DNA of 64,000 nt, taken from the IMG/VR virus record IMGVR_UViG_3300046516_001816, positions 220,984 to 284,983 of that record; one strand, given 5' to 3'. Shown here piece after piece: positions 2,462 to 39,136 of this stretch (positions within the stretch are counted from its first letter, which is position 1; each line of letters opens with the position of its first letter). The translations under genes and the position numbers were made by a program. The notes beneath the pieces are model-generated. The model was not told where the DNA came from. It saw only the letters and a program-made list of their open reading frames with translations, and ran no database searches.

Positions 2462-2756
2462 CATCGCGAAGTTGTTTGTCTGGAATGGCGAGCCGGATCT
2501 GAAGCTCAAGAATCTGGACGTCGATATGGATAAGCTCTACGAGCGTCTTAAGGCAGAGATGGCCAAGCGCCATGCGATCGGTCAGTCGATGTTTTTCAGC
2601 AAGACGCTCCCCGATCTGTCTGAAATCTTCATCGGCGTGGACCCCGGTGATCAGGTCAACCGTCCCACGATCATGAAGGTGTTGAAAGCCAAGCCCCAGG
2701 GTGGCGAACGTCTCCAGTTCGTTGTCCTGGATTCGTATTGTGGTTTCAAGGAATAA
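2454..2756 (+). CDS. hypothetical protein
   Basis: GTG start overlapping the end of the previous ORF; 100 aa. Confidence 0.7.
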   Translation: MSDIAKLFVWNGEPDLKLKNLDVDMDKLYERLKAEMAKRHAIGQSMFFSKTLPDLSEIFIGVDPGDQVNRPTIMKVLKAKPQGGERLQFVVLDSYCGFKE

Positions 2757-2758
2757 TA

Positions 2759-3313
2759 ATGCTCAGCAAACAAACCAAGGAACGCATCCACAAGAACAAG
2801 CAACGTCGACGGATGTTTCGTAACAAGTCAGCACGGGATCTCTTTCTGTCGCTCTACAGCGATCCGCATATCGCTCGACCGAATCGCAACGGCCTGAATT
2901 TCATGGCGCATCTACGCGAGCACATCAAGGGCGGCATGATGTCGGGTGATCTGTTTGTGATGCCTGCATTGGTCCGTCCCAGTCAATGTAAGTCGGACCT
3001 CGTGGGGTCTGAGGGCCGTCGCGCCCTGATGACTGGTGGTAAGTCTCTCATCGCCACGAAAGACCCCTATTCGGTCGTACTCGACAACGACACGTTGCTC
3101 AAGGGTGGCGACCTCCGGCAGATTTTCACCCGCATGCACGCGCAGCAACAGGTGCGGATGTTGGATGAGGCGCATATGGCGCCGCGCATGATTGTCCATC
3201 CGGATGGCCGCAAAGAAATCATCGGCTGGAGTTACGTCGATGGTCCGTATGACAGGAATAACAAGGAAAACAAAGATGCTCAGCAGTCAAGTGAAAGCAC
3301 GAATCGCCCGTAA
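2759..3313 (+). CDS. hypothetical protein with N-terminal basic motif KxRIxxNKxRR
   Basis: AAGGA RBS before ATG 2759; MLSKQTKERIHKNKQRRR. Confidence 0.75.
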   Translation: MLSKQTKERIHKNKQRRRMFRNKSARDLFLSLYSDPHIARPNRNGLNFMAHLREHIKGGMMSGDLFVMPALVRPSQCKSDLVGSEGRRALMTGGKSLIATKDPYSVVLDNDTLLKGGDLRQIFTRMHAQQQVRMLDEAHMAPRMIVHPDGRKEIIGWSYVDGPYDRNNKENKDAQQSSESTNRP

Positions 3314-3677
3314 TAAGAACCGGCGGCGTTATCGCCTGAAGCTTAAGCAGGATGGTCAGGACTGGATGGACTTTAGCCAAACGTTGCGTTCACGGTTGCC
3401 TGCTGGTCTAGCCCGCATCAAAAGACAGGCGGACGGCGCCATGGAGATTGACTTCCCGCTCAGTACGTCAGACGACAGCACCAACCCCAACAACTGTCTG
3501 ACCTGTGACCATCACCAAAACCCCGACGGCGGGCACTGCTATATGTTCCGTGACGCCCCCACGGAAGTCTGCATGCAGCACACGGGTCGCCAGATGCCGG
3601 GCTTCTTGAAGGAGTTCTACGCTGACATGATGCCTCGGCTTCCGGATGACCAGTGGAAGGTGTTGTTCAAGGGTTAA
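3276..3677 (+). CDS. hypothetical protein with N-terminal basic motif and Cys/His cluster
   Basis: AAGGA RBS before ATG 3276; MLSSQVKARIARNKNRRR; CLTCDH..HC..C..H is a putative metal site. Confidence 0.7.
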   Translation: MLSSQVKARIARNKNRRRYRLKLKQDGQDWMDFSQTLRSRLPAGLARIKRQADGAMEIDFPLSTSDDSTNPNNCLTCDHHQNPDGGHCYMFRDAPTEVCMQHTGRQMPGFLKEFYADMMPRLPDDQWKVLFKG

Positions 3678-3713
3678 GCTGTTCTTTCAATTAAACTAAA
3701 CCAAGGAAACAGA

Positions 3714-5126
3714 GTGAAAAACGAACTCACGATCAGCAAATTGATGATGATGGAAATGCCGGGTTACCGTGAGCAGTACCGACGTATCTATACGGGCTCG
3801 GGTGATCACGTCGGGATTCACCAGTTCGCTGAAACGATCAATACCCTGGATGACGTCGAAGTCACCGGGGCGATCGCCGCGCAGCACGTCCACAAAGTGT
3901 TGCGCTTTGCGGACCAACCCGAACCGAGTGCGCCGATTCCCTTTGGCTGGGACGCGCCACGGTATTCGTTCTTGCTGGTGGTGGAAACGAAAACGCCGAT
4001 GGGCAGCAAAGAGATCACGCATCTGGCTGGTTACACCGACCGCGTGGCGCCGATTGGCGAGCTGGAGTTTCATATCAACAGCACAGCGACCTGGCGAGAA
4101 ATGCCTAATCGCGACGGCAGCGGCTACACGCTCATGTCGCAAGATCACCTGCACATGGATCCGAACGGTCAAGCGCTCTCGGGCGGGAATTACTCGGAGT
4201 TGATGCGCCCGAAGGATATCTTCTCGCGGCTGTCGCTGGGTGACGGACTGGCCATGGAAGAGGTGATCGATTTGCGCACCCGTGTCTCGGCGTATGCGAC
4301 GCGTTCGGACCGCTACAATGTCGTGCCGTCGGCGTGGCTTTCCAAGCTGGTGGAAGCATATCTGTCGGCGCTGCAAGATGAACTGGCCGCCAATGAAAGC
4401 ACGGGGCTCTGGCACGTGTGTCAGGTTCACGCTGAAGAAACCCCGATCCGTTACAATCCGGTCCTCAGTGCCTTGGCGCAATTGGCAGCCAAACAAAACG
4501 GCACGTTCACCTTCGACGATCTGAAACTCCTCGATAGCGAAGTCGCTGAGAAGACGACCGTTGCCAACCAGGGTAGTGATGACGCCAATGCAAAACTGAT
4601 CTACTCGAACAATTATGAGGACTGGGACGTCGCAGTCGGGGAAGGCGAAGTCAGTCACGCTACGATTGCTTATGCGGCTGGCATGGCGTTACCACCCGTG
4701 ATGAATGAGGCGGGGTTGTCCAGTGCGCATTTCGTGGTGCTGTATTCGCCGGACAGTCCGGCGAGCGTCGAAGTGCGCATCATCACAGTGAGCCCGATCT
4801 TTGCAACAAGCGATCTGAAAGCCGCGATTGATTTGTTTGTGTACGAGTTTGAAACGCTGGTCTTGCCGCAACTCGCGCCGCGCGATTACGAAGGCATCGA
4901 AACGTTGTTCCTCGAGATCGACGCGGATCTCTACGGCACCACTGCGGTACGGGTGGCGCTGGATAAGCCCGAGAACACCAAGACGTTTTTGTTGCCCTCG
5001 TTTGCGGATTCGCTGCTGAGCCCGCTGCTGACCATCGAAGCCTGCAACACCACCAAGGACTTTATGGATCTCACGATCCTCGCCCGGGAGCTGGAAGCCG
5101 GACTGTCTCGGTTGACGGTGAAGTAG
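3714..5126 (+). CDS. phiKZ gp68-like non-virion RNA polymerase specificity (sigma-like) subunit homolog
   Basis: Blocks ISKLMMMEMPGYREQYRRIY, RYSFLLVVE, LAGYTD, FHINS, LMRPKDIF and PSFADSLLSPLLT match the recalled pattern of gp68-family proteins; 470 aa. Confidence 0.6.
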   Translation: MKNELTISKLMMMEMPGYREQYRRIYTGSGDHVGIHQFAETINTLDDVEVTGAIAAQHVHKVLRFADQPEPSAPIPFGWDAPRYSFLLVVETKTPMGSKEITHLAGYTDRVAPIGELEFHINSTATWREMPNRDGSGYTLMSQDHLHMDPNGQALSGGNYSELMRPKDIFSRLSLGDGLAMEEVIDLRTRVSAYATRSDRYNVVPSAWLSKLVEAYLSALQDELAANESTGLWHVCQVHAEETPIRYNPVLSALAQLAAKQNGTFTFDDLKLLDSEVAEKTTVANQGSDDANAKLIYSNNYEDWDVAVGEGEVSHATIAYAAGMALPPVMNEAGLSSAHFVVLYSPDSPASVEVRIITVSPIFATSDLKAAIDLFVYEFETLVLPQLAPRDYEGIETLFLEIDADLYGTTAVRVALDKPENTKTFLLPSFADSLLSPLLTIEACNTTKDFMDLTILARELEAGLSRLTVK

Positions 5127-7741: not shown

Positions 7742-7824
7742 AGCGCAGTTCTCCCCCAACAACCCAGCATCCAAGCAGGCGTTCACGAAGAGCGCCTAGT
7801 TAAACACATTCAAGGAGTAGGAAC

Positions 7825-8025
7825 ATGTCGGCATTGAAAGACGTTGCAAAGTGCGCAGCCATTGGTGTAGCCGTGGGCGCAGGTGTGATCGGTGGTTTCT
7901 ACGTGGGTGGCAAGCTCTGCAATGCAAGCTTCAAGGCAGCAGACTGGACCAAGTCGAAGTTCTCGAAGAACAAGGCTGCCCAGGCCGACGCCGCACCCGC
8001 TGAGACGCAAGCCGCAGCGAGCTAA
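7825..8025 (+). CDS. small Gly-rich membrane protein
   Basis: AAGGAG RBS; AAIGVAVGAGVIGGFYVGG. Confidence 0.8.
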   Translation: MSALKDVAKCAAIGVAVGAGVIGGFYVGGKLCNASFKAADWTKSKFSKNKAAQADAAPAETQAAAS

Positions 8026-8088
8026 TCCCCCCTCTCGTAGCGTGCCGGGGTTCGCCCCGGCCGCTATGCCGTTAAACTGGAGAGCGTA

Positions 8089-8349
8089 ATGAATATCGTC
8101 TTATGGTGGTATGTGAATGATCCGCTGGGGACGATTCTCACTGCACTTTCGTTCCTGGCAGTTCTGGCAATGGTTCTGATCCCTCTGGCTATCGACCGCG
8201 TCTACGGTCATCAGACAGACGAAGAACTGGTCCAACAAATCCTGGCTGAGATTCAAGCCAAACTTAATAACAAATCCCAAACCAACGTCACTGATGAAAA
8301 CGTTCACGAACAACGAAGTCGCAACAACGATGCGCAGGTTGTACGATAG
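8089..8349 (+). CDS. single-TM hypothetical protein
   Basis: GGAG RBS; ILTALSFLAVLAMVLIPLAI. Confidence 0.65.
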   Translation: MNIVLWWYVNDPLGTILTALSFLAVLAMVLIPLAIDRVYGHQTDEELVQQILAEIQAKLNNKSQTNVTDENVHEQRSRNNDAQVVR

Positions 8350-9955: not shown

Positions 9956-9972
9956 ACGTTTAGGAGGTTGTC

Positions 9973-10182
9973 ATGGTCCGCCGCATCGATGCTATTCCCG
10001 CGTTTCAATCGTTTCAGCAATACCTGAATCAGGCGCCTGCACAACCTCTTGTGAAAGGTGTGGTAAAGGCGCAGTTGAACGAGCTTCCGAGCTCGACGCA
10101 TGTCGTGATTTCCGCTGAAGGTCGCCGTCGTTTGGCCGCCGCTCAGTTGGAAGCACGGGTGCCTTACGACATCGAACTGTAA
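9973..10182 (+). CDS. small hypothetical protein
   Basis: AGGAGG RBS; followed by a terminator. Confidence 0.75.
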   Translation: MVRRIDAIPAFQSFQQYLNQAPAQPLVKGVVKAQLNELPSSTHVVISAEGRRRLAAAQLEARVPYDIEL

Positions 10183-10204
10183 GAGTTTCCTCTGCTGTAT
10201 CTTT

Positions 10205-10231
10205 GAGGGGCCTTCGGGTCCCTCTTTTTTT
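10205..10231 (+). terminator. rho-independent terminator
   Basis: GAGGGGCC-TTCG-GGTCCCTC plus T-tract. Confidence 0.85.
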
Positions 10232-10266
10232 GTTTAATCCTGTGTCTTTTACAGGAGATCCTTGCT

Positions 10267-10629
10267 ATGTTTCAAAAGCTCCAGGCTTTATGGGCGCGTG
10301 TGCAACCACTCATCACCTTTGCGCAGACGCGTCGTCTGACAGCCAAGACCTTTAGCGATATGTTCACCAACTGGAACGGCGACGTCGATCCAGCACGCTT
10401 GGTGGGCTATGGTTTCGTGATGCTCGGTGGCATTCAGTTTCTGTCGCTCTCGCTCTACGACACCCTGAAAAATCACACGTTCAATTACATGGGGTTCTCC
10501 ACTGGCCTCGTGGCGATCTCCGGTGCCATCACAGCTGCGGCCGCTGGGGTGCGCTGGAAGCAACTGGCTGAAGCGCCGATGCCTCCGGCAGGTGACCCCG
10601 TGTTCAACCCGCCGAACGCGAATGGTTGA
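10267..10629 (+). CDS. two-TM membrane protein (holin-like topology)
   Basis: AGGAG RBS; two hydrophobic segments; function not established. Confidence 0.7.
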   Translation: MFQKLQALWARVQPLITFAQTRRLTAKTFSDMFTNWNGDVDPARLVGYGFVMLGGIQFLSLSLYDTLKNHTFNYMGFSTGLVAISGAITAAAAGVRWKQLAEAPMPPAGDPVFNPPNANG

Positions 10630-10639
10630 TAGTATTTAC

Positions 10640-11230
10640 CGCCGCCCAGTAGAAAGTTACTCGGGCGTTATGGTATGCGGAGAGAAATCTCTGGATCATG
10701 GAATGCGTTAGATAGGGTTAGACACTGTCTGATGAGCGGTGCAAGTCCGCAGCGGTTTTGGGGGGATGCGCAATGCTAACTCTTGAGGCCGCCCAGGTGC
10801 AACGCCTGCGAAACCTCGTGGCACAGACTCCCTGGGTCTGGTGGTGGTAGGGATGGCTTTAGCTCAGATACTGTCGGGATGACAGAAAAATGGCGGGCAG
10901 CGGAAGGAGAGAACGGGCCTTCTTTGATCCTTATCGGTTTAGCCGCGTTGTAACAGTCTGCTCACGAGTTACCGTGCTCGACTGCCAGGTTTACCAGACC
11001 TGGAACGGTACGCCCAGTATAGCTGGGAAGTTGTAGCCTAGTTGATGCTTCGGCTCCTAGGACGCAGCCTGCAAGAGATGATGGTGTTCGGTGCGTGGGT
11101 CATTCACGCAAGCGTCAGAGACTGGCTGTCTCTGGAACCAGGATAAACTTATCGAAACGGTCGTCTCCCCGGATGAGATAAGCGGAACTGCTTCACACCC
11201 GTCTCTTGTGGGATGCGGATCCCTTTTTTT
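10640..11230 (+). ncRNA. candidate large structured non-coding RNA (~590 nt)
   Basis: No credible ORF. More than 12 hairpins/stems, GAAA/GCAA/UUCG loops, two similar UGCAA T-loop-like hairpins, G-U-rich stems pointing to the + strand, and a 3' hairpin plus U-tract. Confidence 0.65.
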
Positions 11231-11251
11231 ATTTTGTCAACTTGCCATGAC

Positions 11252-11845
11252 ATGCAAACGTATACAAACGAAGCGTTGCTAGCCCGTATTCAAGTGATCG
11301 ACGGATTCTTTAGTGAGGCCGCGCTACGAGACCTGGAGTTCTTCTGGCGAGCGCCGATCTGGAAGTACGACTGGAAGACCAGTGGCACCGAGTATAACTT
11401 CTGGGGTACCCGACTGATGGGACTGGGGCAAGCCGAAACCCTCACCAACTGCGAGCACCAGTTTCAGGACAGTGCGATGAATGCGTTTCTGGGACGTGTC
11501 TGGTATGCGATTCGGGACCACTATCTGCCCGATCATGAACTCATTCGTTGTGCAGGAGCAGCGTACAACCAGGGGGCGGATGGCTTTATCCACACGGACA
11601 ATGCAGCGGAAGGTTACACGAGCATTCTGGTGTACACGCATCCGTACTGGGAAGCGCATTGGGGTGGCGAGATTGGCTATTACACTCTGGATCAGAGTGA
11701 GCTACTCACCATGATTGCCCCCAAGCCTGGACGCTTACTCATTGCCCCGGGGTTTATTCCGCATCGTCCGTTTGCCCCCGGTCGTAATGTCGATAGTTTG
11801 CGCGCCGCACTGAATTTTAGATCAAGACCAAAGGTAAACAAATGA
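11252..11845 (+). CDS. 2OG-Fe(II) oxygenase (prolyl-hydroxylase-like)
   Basis: HxD (IHTD), WGGE, distal His (IPHR) and Arg (LRAALNF). Confidence 0.85.
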   Translation: MQTYTNEALLARIQVIDGFFSEAALRDLEFFWRAPIWKYDWKTSGTEYNFWGTRLMGLGQAETLTNCEHQFQDSAMNAFLGRVWYAIRDHYLPDHELIRCAGAAYNQGADGFIHTDNAAEGYTSILVYTHPYWEAHWGGEIGYYTLDQSELLTMIAPKPGRLLIAPGFIPHRPFAPGRNVDSLRAALNFRSRPKVNK

Positions 11846-12465
11846 AACAATTGGGGAATCTGGAAGACGAGATCTGGGTGCTCGATGATCTGATTCCTAA
11901 GGATGTCCAGGCACGCTTATCCGCTACGGTCCAAAGTCCCGTCTGGGGGTATGATTGGCGCACGTCTTTGTCGGATCGCTATCCGGTCTGGGGTCGCAGT
12001 GTGGCTTCCCCGATGCGCGGGGACTTGAATGTCCAGGAGCAGTTACTCCAAGACACCCAGCAGCTCGACTCCGCTGAGATCTGGAAACTGTTCACGAAGA
12101 GCTTTCTGCGCGGACACAGTCTGCTGCGCGCCTTTGTGATTGGCTTTCACCATGGCTGCGAAGGCTACGCCCACGGGGACAACGTCGATCCGGAAACGGG
12201 CACCGAGATGGGTAACGGGCTGAACCTCACCAACTATCGCTCTACCATTGTGTTTGCCTTCAATGAGTGGGACGCCGCGTGGGGCGGGGAAATGGTGCTC
12301 TATAACCGGGAGATGACGGACATTGTCATGGCCGTTGAGCCCAAACCCTTTCGAGTGCTGAGCTTTCCGGGGTTCCTGCCGCATAAACCGAATGGTCCGA
12401 CCCGTGTCTCGGATCAGTTCCTGCCGCTTTTGTCGTATCGCTCCAAACAAATCCTTCGCAAGTGA
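11842..12465 (+). CDS. 2OG-Fe(II) oxygenase paralog
   Basis: AHGD, WDAAWGGE, LPHK; the Arg seen in the other two copies is replaced. Confidence 0.8.
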   Translation: MKQLGNLEDEIWVLDDLIPKDVQARLSATVQSPVWGYDWRTSLSDRYPVWGRSVASPMRGDLNVQEQLLQDTQQLDSAEIWKLFTKSFLRGHSLLRAFVIGFHHGCEGYAHGDNVDPETGTEMGNGLNLTNYRSTIVFAFNEWDAAWGGEMVLYNREMTDIVMAVEPKPFRVLSFPGFLPHKPNGPTRVSDQFLPLLSYRSKQILRK

Positions 12466-12472
12466 GACCACT

Positions 12473-13093
12473 GTGAGTATTATTCAAACGTCCCGTAAAG
12501 AGTTGGCCGACCGCGTACAAGTCCACGATGGACTGATTCCTGTCGGCCTGCAAGAACACCTCACCGCCCTGGTGACCAAGCCCATTTGGGCGCATGGCTG
12601 GAAGTCCAATGCCGAGAACGACAAGTATTCGTTCTGGCACGCCCACTTCGCCGGCGGCGATCTGCACAACCGTGTCAGCTGCGAAACCGAGCTTGACGAG
12701 AAGGGACCGGTGGCGGTGGCTCGCCTCTGGGATCTGCTGAGGAAGACGATTCTGCAAGGTCATGAGCCGTTGCGTGCGTACGGCAACGCCCACACGTTTG
12801 GCTGTGAGGGCTACATCCATGTCGACAATCGAGACAGCGACAACTATTTCTCGACCATCATCTATACCAACAAGAACTGGAAAGCCTGGTGGGGTGGTGA
12901 AACGCTCTTCTACGGACTGGACCAGAAGGACATTATCAAGGCCTGTGCCGCGCTGCCGTTTCGGATCGTGACCTTCCCGGGACATATCCCGCACAAGGCC
13001 AACGCGCCGGCGCGCGACGTGCCCGACCTGCGCACATGCATCGTGTTCAAGTCGCACCTGAAACAGGCCCCGGCACAACCGACGGAGGTGTAA
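12473..13093 (+). CDS. 2OG-Fe(II) oxygenase paralog
   Basis: IHVD, WWGGET, IPHK, LRTCIVFK; GTG start inferred. Confidence 0.85.
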   Translation: MSIIQTSRKELADRVQVHDGLIPVGLQEHLTALVTKPIWAHGWKSNAENDKYSFWHAHFAGGDLHNRVSCETELDEKGPVAVARLWDLLRKTILQGHEPLRAYGNAHTFGCEGYIHVDNRDSDNYFSTIIYTNKNWKAWWGGETLFYGLDQKDIIKACAALPFRIVTFPGHIPHKANAPARDVPDLRTCIVFKSHLKQAPAQPTEV

Positions 13094-13094
13094 C

Positions 13095-13610
13095 GTGCTT
13101 GTGGACCGTGAAAAAATCATGGCCTTTTTAGAGGCTCACCATGCCTCTACGGCCGGTCACAGTGGTAGGACCTTCCTGCGCCATTTGGAGGGCACTGAGC
13201 GCATTCTAAGGGACTGGGGATGCCCTCAACACTTGCAGCTGGCTGGATTGTTCCATTCGATCTATGGGACGAACATTTTCACGGTTCAAAGCGCGTCGTT
13301 TGGTGAGCGCGAAGTGATCTCGTCCTTGATTGGACCGATCGGCGAATGGTTGGCGTATCTGTTTTGTGTGACGGCGCGACCCGATGCCTTCTTCATTGCC
13401 AAGACCTCCAAGAGCATGCGGCATCGCTACACGCAGATGCCCATTGCGGTGCGTGACGATGATTTGCGTGATCTGTTTCTGCTCGAAGCGGCGAACCATA
13501 TCGAACAGAACATGAACCCTCCGCTCGTGAAACGCATCCACGACCTCTACCAAGACGATCCTACTGTTACCGACGCCGCCAAGTACGGGATGTGGGAATT
13601 CTTTAGCTAA
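13095..13610 (+). CDS. HD-like DUF6817-type protein
   Basis: HSGRTFLRHLEGT...WG...AGLFHSIYGT signature. Confidence 0.7.
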   Translation: MLVDREKIMAFLEAHHASTAGHSGRTFLRHLEGTERILRDWGCPQHLQLAGLFHSIYGTNIFTVQSASFGEREVISSLIGPIGEWLAYLFCVTARPDAFFIAKTSKSMRHRYTQMPIAVRDDDLRDLFLLEAANHIEQNMNPPLVKRIHDLYQDDPTVTDAAKYGMWEFFS

Positions 13611-16257: not shown

Positions 16258-16833
16258 ATGTCCCACTCTCTCGAAAGTCAACACCTGGTGGAAGTCGATA
16301 AGCTTCTGAAGCTGTCGATGAGCGGAAGCTGGTTCTTTAAGAATCAGATGCAGGACTATGCAGACGAAAGCGAAATCGCTGAAATCGCCAAGCGCCTGGA
16401 TACGCTCTACGACCAGGGCGTGAAACACAACGCGGGTCGCAGCTTTAACCCGAAGTACCAGTTCCATCGGGTCGCCGATATGGACACGCAGACCCCCAAG
16501 GTCTACTTGCAATTGCTGCTGCCGGGCAACCATTTCAACGCTGCCAAGTTGGTCGGCGAGATTTGCCTGCATCTGAGTCTCGAAGACCACGGATGCATCC
16601 GACTCTCGCTGCCGCTGGAAACGGCTGCGCAGAAGTTGGCACGGGAGCATCACTGGAAGGTGTCAGAGGCTGAGTTGGAGGCACTCACCACGCTCATCGA
16701 AGCAGCAAAAGCGCTCCAGGACCTGGGCAGTAAGAATCTGCCCGTGACGCTGGATGTCGGTCGCGACGGTGTGAAGATCAGCACCGGCTATTATAATCCG
16801 GTTGACCAAGTGCGGGCTGCACTCGCTCGCTAG
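16258..16833 (+). CDS. hypothetical protein
   Basis: AAAGGA RBS; 191 aa. Confidence 0.8.
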   Translation: MSHSLESQHLVEVDKLLKLSMSGSWFFKNQMQDYADESEIAEIAKRLDTLYDQGVKHNAGRSFNPKYQFHRVADMDTQTPKVYLQLLLPGNHFNAAKLVGEICLHLSLEDHGCIRLSLPLETAAQKLAREHHWKVSEAELEALTTLIEAAKALQDLGSKNLPVTLDVGRDGVKISTGYYNPVDQVRAALAR

Positions 16834-36823: not shown

Positions 36824-39136
36824 ATGACTGTCGTGGCTTCCACAAATTCAAATTACTTCCAGGTCTACCTGAACGCGTGCGTCGCGTTGGCCCAGACCAT
36901 GGTCATCAAATCGACCGAATCAGAACAAGGACTAAACCAATTCGTTATTGACAACTATGGCGCGGCGGCCTGGGACGAGACCGATCCGACGTCGTGGAAA
37001 TACTACATGAATCTTTCTGGCAAATATCATTTTACTGACCAGATGATGTATGTTATCTCCCTCGACACGATGGAGCGCATCGAGTTCACGCCGGCGAACC
37101 TGTTGATCCATACGGCGACCGCGCAAGCGTACCAGTTTGGCTCGACGTATTACCAGGCGCTGGTGGACCAGTACCCGCGTCAGGTCTCGTTGATTCTGGG
37201 CATTCTGTATCCCGTGGATCAAGCCACTGCCATCGCTGCAAAGGATGGACAGATCCTCGGTTGGCCCGCCCAGTATATCGAGGTGAACGAGTACAGCCTG
37301 GTGGAGAAACTGCAAGCGTGGATCTATGGCTTTAAACAGCGCTGGATCAACCCGCAATTTGGGCTGAGTGACGAATTGTATTTCACGGTGCAGCTGCACC
37401 ACATGTATCAGGGTTTGCTCCAGGCGATCATTGCGTACCGCGAAGAAGCGTGTCGCACTGCGGAGATGCACAGCTTTCATCAGCAGCAGTTTCTGGCCTC
37501 CCATCAGGGACTGGACCAGTACATGGACCAGCTGAGCTTGAACCAGATCGTCTGGCTGTGTCGCAATATCAACTATATCCAGCGCAATGTGGGCAAGCGC
37601 TCGACGTTTCAAACGCTGATCCAGAACATCTTGACGGTGCGCAATATTCCGCTGGCGGCGTACACCATGCGGCACAACACTGGCCACATGCCCACGCTGA
37701 CGAGCCCCGAAGTGTTCTTCCAGTCGGACCCGTTGAATTTCGACGAGAACCTGGTGGCTTCCACCAACTGGACGCTCGCCACGATGCTGGACACTGAGCA
37801 GCCGCTGGCGACCATGAACGCGCAGATTCAAACGGATCAGGCGGCGGACATTCAGTTGCGCATGGAAAACGCGCTGTCCAATACGCTGCAAACCAAGGTG
37901 CTCAATAGCGCCATGGTGGACGAAACCGATTCGACGCCGTACACGATGGAAGACATCCTCGTGAACCACTGGCTGCTCTTCTCGCAACAGGATCTGTACA
38001 CTGCCTTCTTGGTGGTGAACAATCCCGTGACGGGTGAGCCGATTGTGCCGATGAATGCGAAGGATGGCTTTGTGTTCATGTGGTACTGCTACTCGCGCAG
38101 CATTGGCATTGATTTGACCAACGCGGTAATCCCAGCGGTGCTGGCCCAGCGCGTTGTGCGTACCCCCCTCCCCAACGTGACCGACTTGATGTCAGTGGTC
38201 GATTGGAGCTTGGTCTCACAGGATATCGCCACGCAAATGCTCGGTTATATGCCTGCGATTAACCCGATGATCTCCACCACGTCGTTCTTTGCGACGTGTA
38301 AGGCGATCTGGACAGCGGCCAATAATCAGCGGGGACTGGTGTCGCGCCAAGAACATTACCTGCGCCGCGGGATGGTGTACGGCATGAGTGAGCGCTGCTA
38401 CCAGGACGTGATGATCCAGCTGGGTGACCAATCGGGTGAGACGTTCTACGAATGGTTCCATCTGCGCAATATCGATCTGGGCAACTTTAGCCAGAACGAC
38501 TGGGGGCTGATGTACACCTCGCTCGTGCAAGCGGCGACTGGCATTGACCTGCTCAATACAAACTCGGTGGCCAACCTCCAGAAAGCCATGATCGGCATCA
38601 TGGAGAAGCTCTCGAGCTATTCGGTGCAGTATCTGTACGAGATTAACAACGGCGCGATTCAGGACATCGACTGGCCGATGGTGCGCGTGGGCGACATCCA
38701 TACCGACGCGGCCATGGAGCTTTATGGCGAGCAAGTCCTCGATACGTACAACGAACGCGTGAGTGGCGTGCTCGGTGACGAGTTCGACATCGGGGCGGCA
38801 ACCTGTGAAGTCTTGAGCGTGGGGGCGAGCGTGCGCAAGGATGAAAACATCTGCATGAGCACCTGGCTCGGTGACAATGCGATGGTGTTTAAGATGCACA
38901 CGCATCAGCTGGTGGGGGTCCGGTCCGCCACGCCCTTGCAAGAAAACAGCCGCGGCATCATTCCGGTGATTGGCCTGGATAACTGGCTCGCCATGGACGA
39001 AGCCGCGCAAGATACATCGTTGGTCAGTATCTATCAGTCCAACTGGAATAACGCACCCAATGCACCGGTGAAACAACTGGCCAGCGTCTGGCCGGTGCGG
39101 AACTTGTCGGGCTTGACCTACACCCCGCCCAATTAA
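36824..39136 (+). CDS. virion structural protein (baseplate-related)
   Basis: DPTSWKYYMNLSGKYH, SLDTME, LSSYSVQ motifs; divergent from portal as in phiKZ-like genomes. Confidence 0.7.
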   Translation: MTVVASTNSNYFQVYLNACVALAQTMVIKSTESEQGLNQFVIDNYGAAAWDETDPTSWKYYMNLSGKYHFTDQMMYVISLDTMERIEFTPANLLIHTATAQAYQFGSTYYQALVDQYPRQVSLILGILYPVDQATAIAAKDGQILGWPAQYIEVNEYSLVEKLQAWIYGFKQRWINPQFGLSDELYFTVQLHHMYQGLLQAIIAYREEACRTAEMHSFHQQQFLASHQGLDQYMDQLSLNQIVWLCRNINYIQRNVGKRSTFQTLIQNILTVRNIPLAAYTMRHNTGHMPTLTSPEVFFQSDPLNFDENLVASTNWTLATMLDTEQPLATMNAQIQTDQAADIQLRMENALSNTLQTKVLNSAMVDETDSTPYTMEDILVNHWLLFSQQDLYTAFLVVNNPVTGEPIVPMNAKDGFVFMWYCYSRSIGIDLTNAVIPAVLAQRVVRTPLPNVTDLMSVVDWSLVSQDIATQMLGYMPAINPMISTTSFFATCKAIWTAANNQRGLVSRQEHYLRRGMVYGMSERCYQDVMIQLGDQSGETFYEWFHLRNIDLGNFSQNDWGLMYTSLVQAATGIDLLNTNSVANLQKAMIGIMEKLSSYSVQYLYEINNGAIQDIDWPMVRVGDIHTDAAMELYGEQVLDTYNERVSGVLGDEFDIGAATCEVLSVGASVRKDENICMSTWLGDNAMVFKMHTHQLVGVRSATPLQENSRGIIPVIGLDNWLAMDEAAQDTSLVSIYQSNWNNAPNAPVKQLASVWPVRNLSGLTYTPPN

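Follow-up and report, generated by a model that had tools for sequence, protein, structure and literature searches.

A conserved large RNA of phiKZ-like jumbo phages contains a predicted, unusual hammerhead ribozyme core

We analyzed a 64,000-nucleotide stretch (here, the window) of a 285-kb IMG/VR contig, IMGVR_UViG_3300046516_001816. Its genes are those of a phiKZ-like jumbo phage and include virion structural proteins, a helicase, an SbcC-like protein, and a 166-aa protein with homologues in phiKZ, PA7, and Noxifer. Positions 10630-11212 (583 nt) are the longest stretch not covered by any ORF of at least 70 aa on either strand. The next-largest stretches free of long ORFs are 9956-10266 and 7787-8100, and the first of these ends with a strong terminator-like hairpin plus T-run at 10205-10234. 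Just downstream of that hairpin, and upstream of the long gap, is a 120-aa membrane-like ORF (10267-10629). Downstream of the gap are three tandem paralogous 2OG-Fe(II) oxygenase genes and a DUF6817 (HD-like) gene (11252-13610). All of these are on the + strand. The first oxygenase gene has no obvious Shine-Dalgarno sequence and starts about 20 nt after a U7 tract. PHROGs labels the oxygenase family "DNA endonuclease V," which looks like a misnomer.

An earlier note, made from the sequence alone, had proposed that this gap encodes a large structured RNA of about 590 nt. To test this, we first examined the single sequence. Rfam covariance models returned nothing at gathering score in the whole window and only chance hits at E values up to 10 for 10400-11450. 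ARAGORN found no tRNA or tmRNA. The + strand folded to -232.4 kcal/mol (z = -2.3, 20 shuffles) and the - strand to -187.3 kcal/mol (z = -2.5). Therefore, single-sequence folding is only mildly better than chance, and the real support comes from homologues.

A blastn search of the gap and its flanks against 50,697 phage records found no relative. However, the 120-aa protein has a 59%-identical homologue in the cultured Burkholderia phage FLC9. About 2 kb downstream of that gene, FLC9 has an unannotated 508-nt gap that shares short blocks with the window, including the first 7-nt-loop hairpin (10736-10750 in the window) with a compensatory stem change (the FLC9 copy is at LC667451 137457-137953, - strand). 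The FLC9 copy matched only itself by blastn. Further members were found by pattern scans of viral, metagenome, and genome collections, by a protein-guided scan, by a covariance model of the conserved block, and by examining contigs that encode homologues of the 120-aa protein. Together these gave 15 distinct sequences in four types, designated here by the L numbers of the sequences that carry them. Type A/D comprises the window, L032 (its closest relative, 74% identity), L026/L039, L007 (an IMG/VR contig), and L016. Type B comprises FLC9 (L003), L012, L034, L035, L037, L005/L010, L006, L008, and L038, and type C is L011/L013. All lie in the same syntenic accessory region, on the same strand as their neighbors. 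L016 is a 22.6-kb contig in a Caballeronia arationis LMG 29324 assembly (NZ_FCOG02000098.1). It is jumbo-phage DNA and is 88% identical to L007 in the RNA, which suggests carriage or contamination and hints at the host genus.

Some candidates were rejected. L009, L014, and L015 were chance pattern hits, and weak covariance-model hits at window positions 37398-37495 (E = 0.45) and 16306-16375 (E = 4.1) are also chance. L025, L027-L030, and L036 carry a homologue of the 120-aa protein but no RNA. This protein is conserved (invariant NWNGD.DPARL.GYGF) and occurs in this phage clade, in unrelated low-GC phage contigs (L025 and L027-L030), and in Paraburkholderia genome contigs, and none of the low-GC or Paraburkholderia contigs carry the RNA. 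phiKZ and Noxifer carry the 166-aa protein homologue but have no gap or RNA.

We next asked if the RNA structure is conserved. The window RNA is 54-74% identical to its four A/D relatives. In the five A/D sequences, RNAalifold predicted 139 pairs, in which 91.6% of cells are canonical. Forty-four pairs carry compensatory double changes, against 8-11 in controls in which the 3' partners were slid by 1-3 columns. The + strand gave the lower consensus energy (-123.9 against -100.8). Indels are not multiples of three, and no ORF is shared. The observation in the earlier note therefore held: this is an ORF-free region that encodes a conserved, heavily folded RNA.

Most of the individual elements listed in the note are conserved and/or covary in relatives. 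These are the leader hairpin (10678-10693), two hairpins with 7-nt loops (10736-10750 and 10794-10808), a G-U-rich stem whose true register is 10753-10764/10780-10791 (one base off that in the note), hairpins at 10824-10840, 10871-10885, 10985-11003, 11013-11027, 11092-11110, and 11115-11135, the 10970-75/11005-10 pair, and above all the long-range helix at 11073-80/11200-07, which is part of a 15-22-bp closing helix. The terminal hairpin plus U tract at 11210-11230 is present. However, a hairpin proposed at 10643-10667 is not conserved as a hairpin and overlaps a promoter-like motif. A proposed long-range pair, 10815-21/10962-68, exists only in this sequence and competes with a conserved helix described below (hammerhead stem III).

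The most conserved block of the family reads ACUGU, CUGAUGA, G, three hairpins, C, GAAA, and this is the core of a type I hammerhead ribozyme. In the window, the core strand C3 U4 G5 A6 U7 G8 A9 (CUGAUGA) is at 10729-10735. It is invariant in 14 of 15 members. The exception, L026/L039, has CUGAAGA, a change at N7, which is the one free position of the hammerhead core and the only core change in the family. The second core strand, C11.1 G12 A13 A14 A15.1 (CGAAA, 10809-10813), is invariant in all 15 members, as is U16.1 (10951) opposite A15.1. The next nucleotide, H17 (A10952 in the window), is A, C, or U in the 15 members and never G. Predicted cleavage falls between A10952 and A10953.

Stems I and III flank this core in the right register. 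Stem I pairs 10724-10728 (ACUGU, positions 2.5-2.1) with 10953-10957 (ACAGU, positions 1.1-1.5). It is exactly 5 bp in all 15 members and changes as ACUGU/ACAGU (types A and D), GCUCU/AGAGC (type B), and GCUGU/ACAGC (type C), so that 2 of its 5 pairs show compensatory changes across types. Stem III lies within 10813-10951. In the window it consists of 10813-14/10950-51, a 2x2 internal loop, and 10817-22/10942-47 (CGUGGC/GCCGCG), and it encloses a 119-nt insert with the hairpins at 10824-10840 and 10871-10885. Stem III is 7-12 bp in every member, with unrelated sequences between types: 12 contiguous bp in L007 and L016, GGGGG/CCCCC in type B, and CGAUAGC/GCUAUCG in L032.

To assess how often such an arrangement arises by chance, we used a descriptor requiring U16.1, H17 not G, a stem I of at least 5 bp against the bases just 5' of C3, and a stem III of at least 7 pairs from A15.1. 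It found exactly one site in each of the 15 members. Only 0.2-1.3% of dinucleotide-shuffled tails yielded any such site, and the 64-kb window has a single hit on both strands, at 10729. Folded alone, the domain 10724-10957 adopted the hammerhead secondary structure, including stem III, as its unconstrained MFE in the window, and the corresponding domain did so in L007. In the other members the hammerhead shape lies within 0.8-4.8 kcal/mol of the MFE. Forcing the core open costs 0.3 kcal/mol in the window and L007 and 0.8-4.8 kcal/mol in the other members.

The region that would normally form stem II is unusual. G and C are invariant at 10.1 and 11.1, but three hairpins lie between them. The first (HP1, 10736-10750) is GCGG-UGCAAGU-CCGC, and its first G occupies position 10.1. 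Its stem variants are all Watson-Crick (GCGG/CCGC, GUGG/CCAC, GGAG/CUCC, and GCCG/CGGC), and its loop is UGCAAGU in 14 of 15 members and UGGAGU in L032. The second (10753-10791) is a long hairpin of variable length and sequence that is present in every member and that in the window has 12 bp, 6 of them G-U. The third (HP2, 10794-10808) is CAGG-UGCAACG-CCUG, directly followed by C11.1. Its loop pattern is (U)G-N-A-A-M-G with N free, and its stem varies (CAGG/CCUG, UGGG/CCCG, UAGG/CCUG, and GGG/CCC). An extended stem II formed by the HP1 5' strand and the HP2 3' strand fails in types B and C. Therefore, stem II is at most one pair plus a four-way junction. Because HP1 itself uses G10.1, the G10.1-C11.1 pair is not demonstrable, although published hammerheads include stem II as short as 1-2 bp (PMC3088659). 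Alternatively, HP1 is stem II, with a large insertion before G12. The earlier note had described the two 7-nt loops as T-loop-like. The T-loop motif is a five-nucleotide U-N-N-R-A fold with a base intercalated between positions 4 and 5. Its sequence pattern occurs in HP1 in 14 of 15 members and in HP2 in 11 of 15 (FLC9, L012, L034, and L035 lack the U), but the G-N-A-A of HP2 fits GNRA equally well. Therefore, the T-loop reading is possible but not provable from sequence.

Downstream of the predicted cleavage site, the middle region (10958-11062) contains the helix 10970-75/11005-10, the hairpin 10985-11003, a pentaloop hairpin (11013-11027), an invariant AAGUUGU (11028-11034), and the helix 11037-41/11057-61. 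AAGUUGU occurs once in all 15 members, downstream of the predicted cleavage site, and its flanking hairpins covary. The HP1 loop has a 5-bp complementarity to AAGUUGU, and about 40% of published hammerheads use a pseudoknot between stems I and II (PMC3088659). However, this pairing is not supported, because L032 changed the loop to UGGAGU while AAGUUGU stayed. Pairing of AAGUUGU with the HP2 loop is inconsistent across members. The HP2 loop is a candidate for a tertiary contact between the stem I and stem II regions. A k-turn reading of CUGAUGA/GA was also rejected, because no GA lies next to stem I on the partner strand.

The 3' domain (11063-11217) is closed by a long helix (11063-66 and 11068-78 with 11202-12 and 11214-17) and contains hairpins at 11089-11114, 11116-11134, and 11135-11194. 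This 15-22-bp closing helix is the best-supported element of the RNA. It has 22 pairs in the A/D alignment, with 104 of 109 cells canonical and 8 compensatory pairs. In a nine-sequence alignment, 12 of 22 pairs carry compensatory changes. It is kept, with further compensatory changes, in types B and C, and L026 and L038 add more. Inside the 3' domain, 11148-11182 is nearly invariant in A/D (CUUAUC-GAAA-CGG-UCGUCUCC-CCG-GAUGA-GAUAAG). It is a hairpin with a GAAA/GAUGA internal loop, a possible tandem G-A motif, and a conserved 8-nt loop.

We also examined the ends of the RNA. Upstream, the window has AAAGTTACT (10653-10661), followed by TATG (10674-10677). L032 has AAAATTACT at the same spacing. 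The motif lies 12 nt before a TATGCG that is conserved in the A/D members (16 nt before the G of TATG). phiKZ middle promoters carry AAanTTACc at about -24, and late promoters carry TATG with the G as +1 (PMC4666361). By analogy with phiKZ only, the window RNA would start at G10677, which is why the region of the proposed 10643-10667 hairpin is probably not part of the RNA. The leader hairpin that follows (10678-10693, CGGAGA-GAAA-UCUCUG) has counterparts of different sequence at the same place in L007, L016, L026, and L032. At the 3' end, a terminator-like hairpin (GGGAU-GCGG-AUCCC, from 11210) is followed by U7 (11224-11230), as in an intrinsic terminator, and its 5' arm overlaps the 3' strand of the closing helix. 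The U7 tract is conserved in L032, L026, and L039, but the local hairpin is not. The terminator is absent in L007/L016 and in types B and C. In type B, the upstream ORF stops 6 nt before stem I, and an RBS with a start codon follows the 3' domain.

The earlier note had suggested a link to the oxygenase/HD cluster. The order 120-aa gene, RNA, U tract, three 2OG oxygenase genes, and DUF6817 recurs in the window, L032 (cassette at 2700-5091), L026 (7036-8880), L039 (7042-9440), and one further contig. However, the cluster is absent next to the RNA in L007, L016, all FLC9-type members, and L011. Therefore, an obligatory link was rejected, and an association holds in only one sublineage. The neighbors of the type B RNA (FLC9, 7412-10594 of L003; L034, L035, and L038) include a cpYpsA SLOG protein, a BubE-domain protein, a 250-aa PhiKZ_MCP-like fragment, and a cyclophilin fused to an Acb2/Tad1-type hairpin domain. 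The RNA therefore sits in what looks like an accessory or counter-defense island.

Overall, the interpretation in the earlier note was partly supported. It was right that this is a phage-encoded, + strand, large structured RNA that matches no Rfam family or tRNA/tmRNA model. The note had seen no tRNA, tmRNA, or RNase P hallmarks, but a reading of the RNA as lacking known hallmark sequences is wrong, because a hammerhead core is there, and this was the key feature that the note missed.

Our preferred explanation, to which we assign a probability of about 0.6, is that the window encodes one member of an undescribed family of 400-650-nt structured RNAs, found in a clade of phiKZ-like jumbo phages that infect Burkholderiaceae and built around an unusual hammerhead variant. 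The alignments establish that the RNA is conserved, noncoding, on the + strand, and folded into many covarying helices and that its most conserved part has the sequence and helix layout of a type I hammerhead, apart from the noncanonical stem II. What follows from this, including self-cleavage itself, is inferred from sequence alone. In this view, the window RNA is transcribed from the TATG-type start near 10677 to the U7 tract, giving about 550 nt. The 5' half folds into the hammerhead, with the usual stem II replaced by a four-way junction (G10.1/C11.1 plus the three hairpins). HP2 joins C11.1 without a linker and so probably stacks on the core like a tRNA T-arm, with its GNRA/T-loop-like loop stabilizing the active fold. 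The RNA would then cut itself between A10952 and A10953, yielding a 276-nt 5' piece ending in a 2',3'-cyclic phosphate and a 3' piece of about 278 nt starting with a 5'-OH. Locked by its long closing helix, the 3' piece should be a stable RNA. In FLC9-type phages, the same cut would separate an upstream ORF from a structured leader fused to the next gene. We are nearly certain that this is a real conserved structured RNA and confident that the hammerhead motif is genuinely there. Self-cleavage is more likely than not, whereas release of a stable 5'-OH RNA or leader as its role is tentative.

Several features weigh against this explanation. The Rfam hammerhead models match neither the window at gathering score or at E values up to 10 nor even the compact FLC9 version, although this is expected given the 60-80-nt insert in stem II. 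To our knowledge, a stem II made of one possible base pair plus three hairpins is unprecedented. Stem I is only 5 bp, and the window's stem III has the 2x2 internal loop. In the A/D members, the 3' strand of stem I has a competing local partner at 10980-10985, which RNAalifold prefers. The motifs ACUGUC and GACAGU/GACUG recur in the window (10711-10729, 10871-10885, 10953-10958, and 10980-10985) and give alternative pairings that would sequester either strand of stem I (an upstream GAUAG with CUGUC, and ACAGUC with GACUGC). This may be a folding switch or postcleavage refolding, but it is seen in the A/D members only and shows no covariation.

The RNA might instead be a large noncleaving structural RNA, in which the hammerhead-like three-way junction is only an architectural element (a tandem G-A junction) and the RNA acts intact, for example, as a scaffold, a decoy, or an RNP component in infection. 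The noncanonical stem II and the lack of an Rfam hammerhead hit fit this, the whole RNA covaries rather than only the core, AAGUUGU and the 3' domain are as conserved as the core, and inactive hammerhead-like RNAs are known (PMC3088659). However, a purely structural junction gives no reason for every catalytic nucleotide to be invariant, for the only core change to fall on N7, or for position 17 to vary among A, C, and U but never G in 15 members, and we consider this reading unlikely. About as unlikely is that the RNA is chiefly a cis-acting leader or processing-and-regulation element, in which the hammerhead cut and/or the choice between closing helix and terminator hairpin sets expression of the oxygenase operon (window type) or the capsid-like gene (FLC9 type), possibly in response to a ligand or protein. 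The RNA is always on the same strand as its neighbors and directly upstream of a gene, and the type B gene arrangement, the overlap of terminator hairpin and closing helix in the window, and the RNA-U7-oxygenase order conserved in one lineage are all consistent with this. However, the downstream gene differs between lineages (2OG oxygenase, PhiKZ_MCP-like, RNase H-like, or the 166-aa protein), no ligand-type conservation was identified, and the A/D members carry their own promoter-like start.

Very unlikely is a diverged member of a known large RNA class (group I/II intron, RNase P, tmRNA, GOLLD, ROOL, OLE, HEARO, or 6S) or a decayed or short protein-coding region. The size, phage context, and T-loop/GNRA-like loops recall such RNAs; the earlier note had remarked that T-loops and GNRA loops are tertiary-contact modules in large RNAs such as RNase P, GOLLD, and ROOL. 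However, Rfam models, including those for tRNA and riboswitches, gave only chance hits at E values up to 10 in the window region and in part of the FLC9 copy (up to 1 over the whole FLC9 locus). The flanking ORFs are complete and unrelated, so the RNA is not an intron, and the absence of a shared ORF or any ORF of 70 aa or more, together with the frame-breaking indels, speaks against coding. More speculatively, and with low probability, the hammerhead core could be the catalytic or regulatory heart of a self-standing, roughly 550-nt multidomain RNA. Either the cloverleaf-like stem II and the 3' domain would sense a ligand or protein and gate cleavage, which would make it a natural allosteric hammerhead, or the two halves would stay together after cleavage as a bipartite RNA that acts in jumbo-phage infection or counter-defense.

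Among known systems, type I hammerheads (Rfam Hammerhead_1 and relatives) include phage intergenic examples, PaP3 and Bcep176, with a Burkholderia phage among those known (PMC3088659). They share with this RNA the CUGANGA and GAAA strands, A15.1-U16.1, an NUH cleavage triplet, a three-helix order with stem I open, and an intergenic position in a phage. Here, however, stem II appears to be replaced by three hairpins (60-80 nt), two of them with 7-nt T-loop/GNRA-like loops, stem III carries up to about 230 nt, stem I is a bare 5 bp, and the motif is embedded in a 400-650-nt covarying RNA that Rfam models do not detect. Discontinuous hammerheads of mammalian 3' UTRs also keep the core while hundreds of nucleotides are inserted in a peripheral stem, but those inserts are unstructured spacers in stem I, whereas here they are conserved, structured domains in stems II and III. 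GOLLD and ROOL are of similar size class, lie in phages or prophages, have many hairpins, and have no known function. We found no sequence or structure match to either in Rfam, neither is known to contain a hammerhead core, and no tRNA genes lie near this RNA. The stem II junction resembles a tRNA cloverleaf in that the last hairpin (4-6 bp, 7-nt loop U-G-N-A-A-N-G) joins the closing pair without a linker, as the T-arm joins the acceptor stem. However, ARAGORN found no tRNA, the middle arm is 12 bp or longer, and the first arm has a T-loop-like loop rather than a D-loop, so this is a resemblance only.

No paper in the literature we could search describes this RNA, and we found no structured RNA or ribozyme described for nucleus-forming-type jumbo phages, in which it would be a large conserved noncoding RNA. 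It would add a structurally new hammerhead form, with a four-way-junction stem II and T-loop/GNRA-like caps, showing that current covariance models miss ornate ribozyme variants. One member sits in a cultured phage, FLC9 on Burkholderia glumae, in which cleavage, RNA ends, and a knockout phenotype are directly testable. Furthermore, the RNA lies in an accessory region rich in candidate counter-defense genes, so its function may bear on phage-host conflict.
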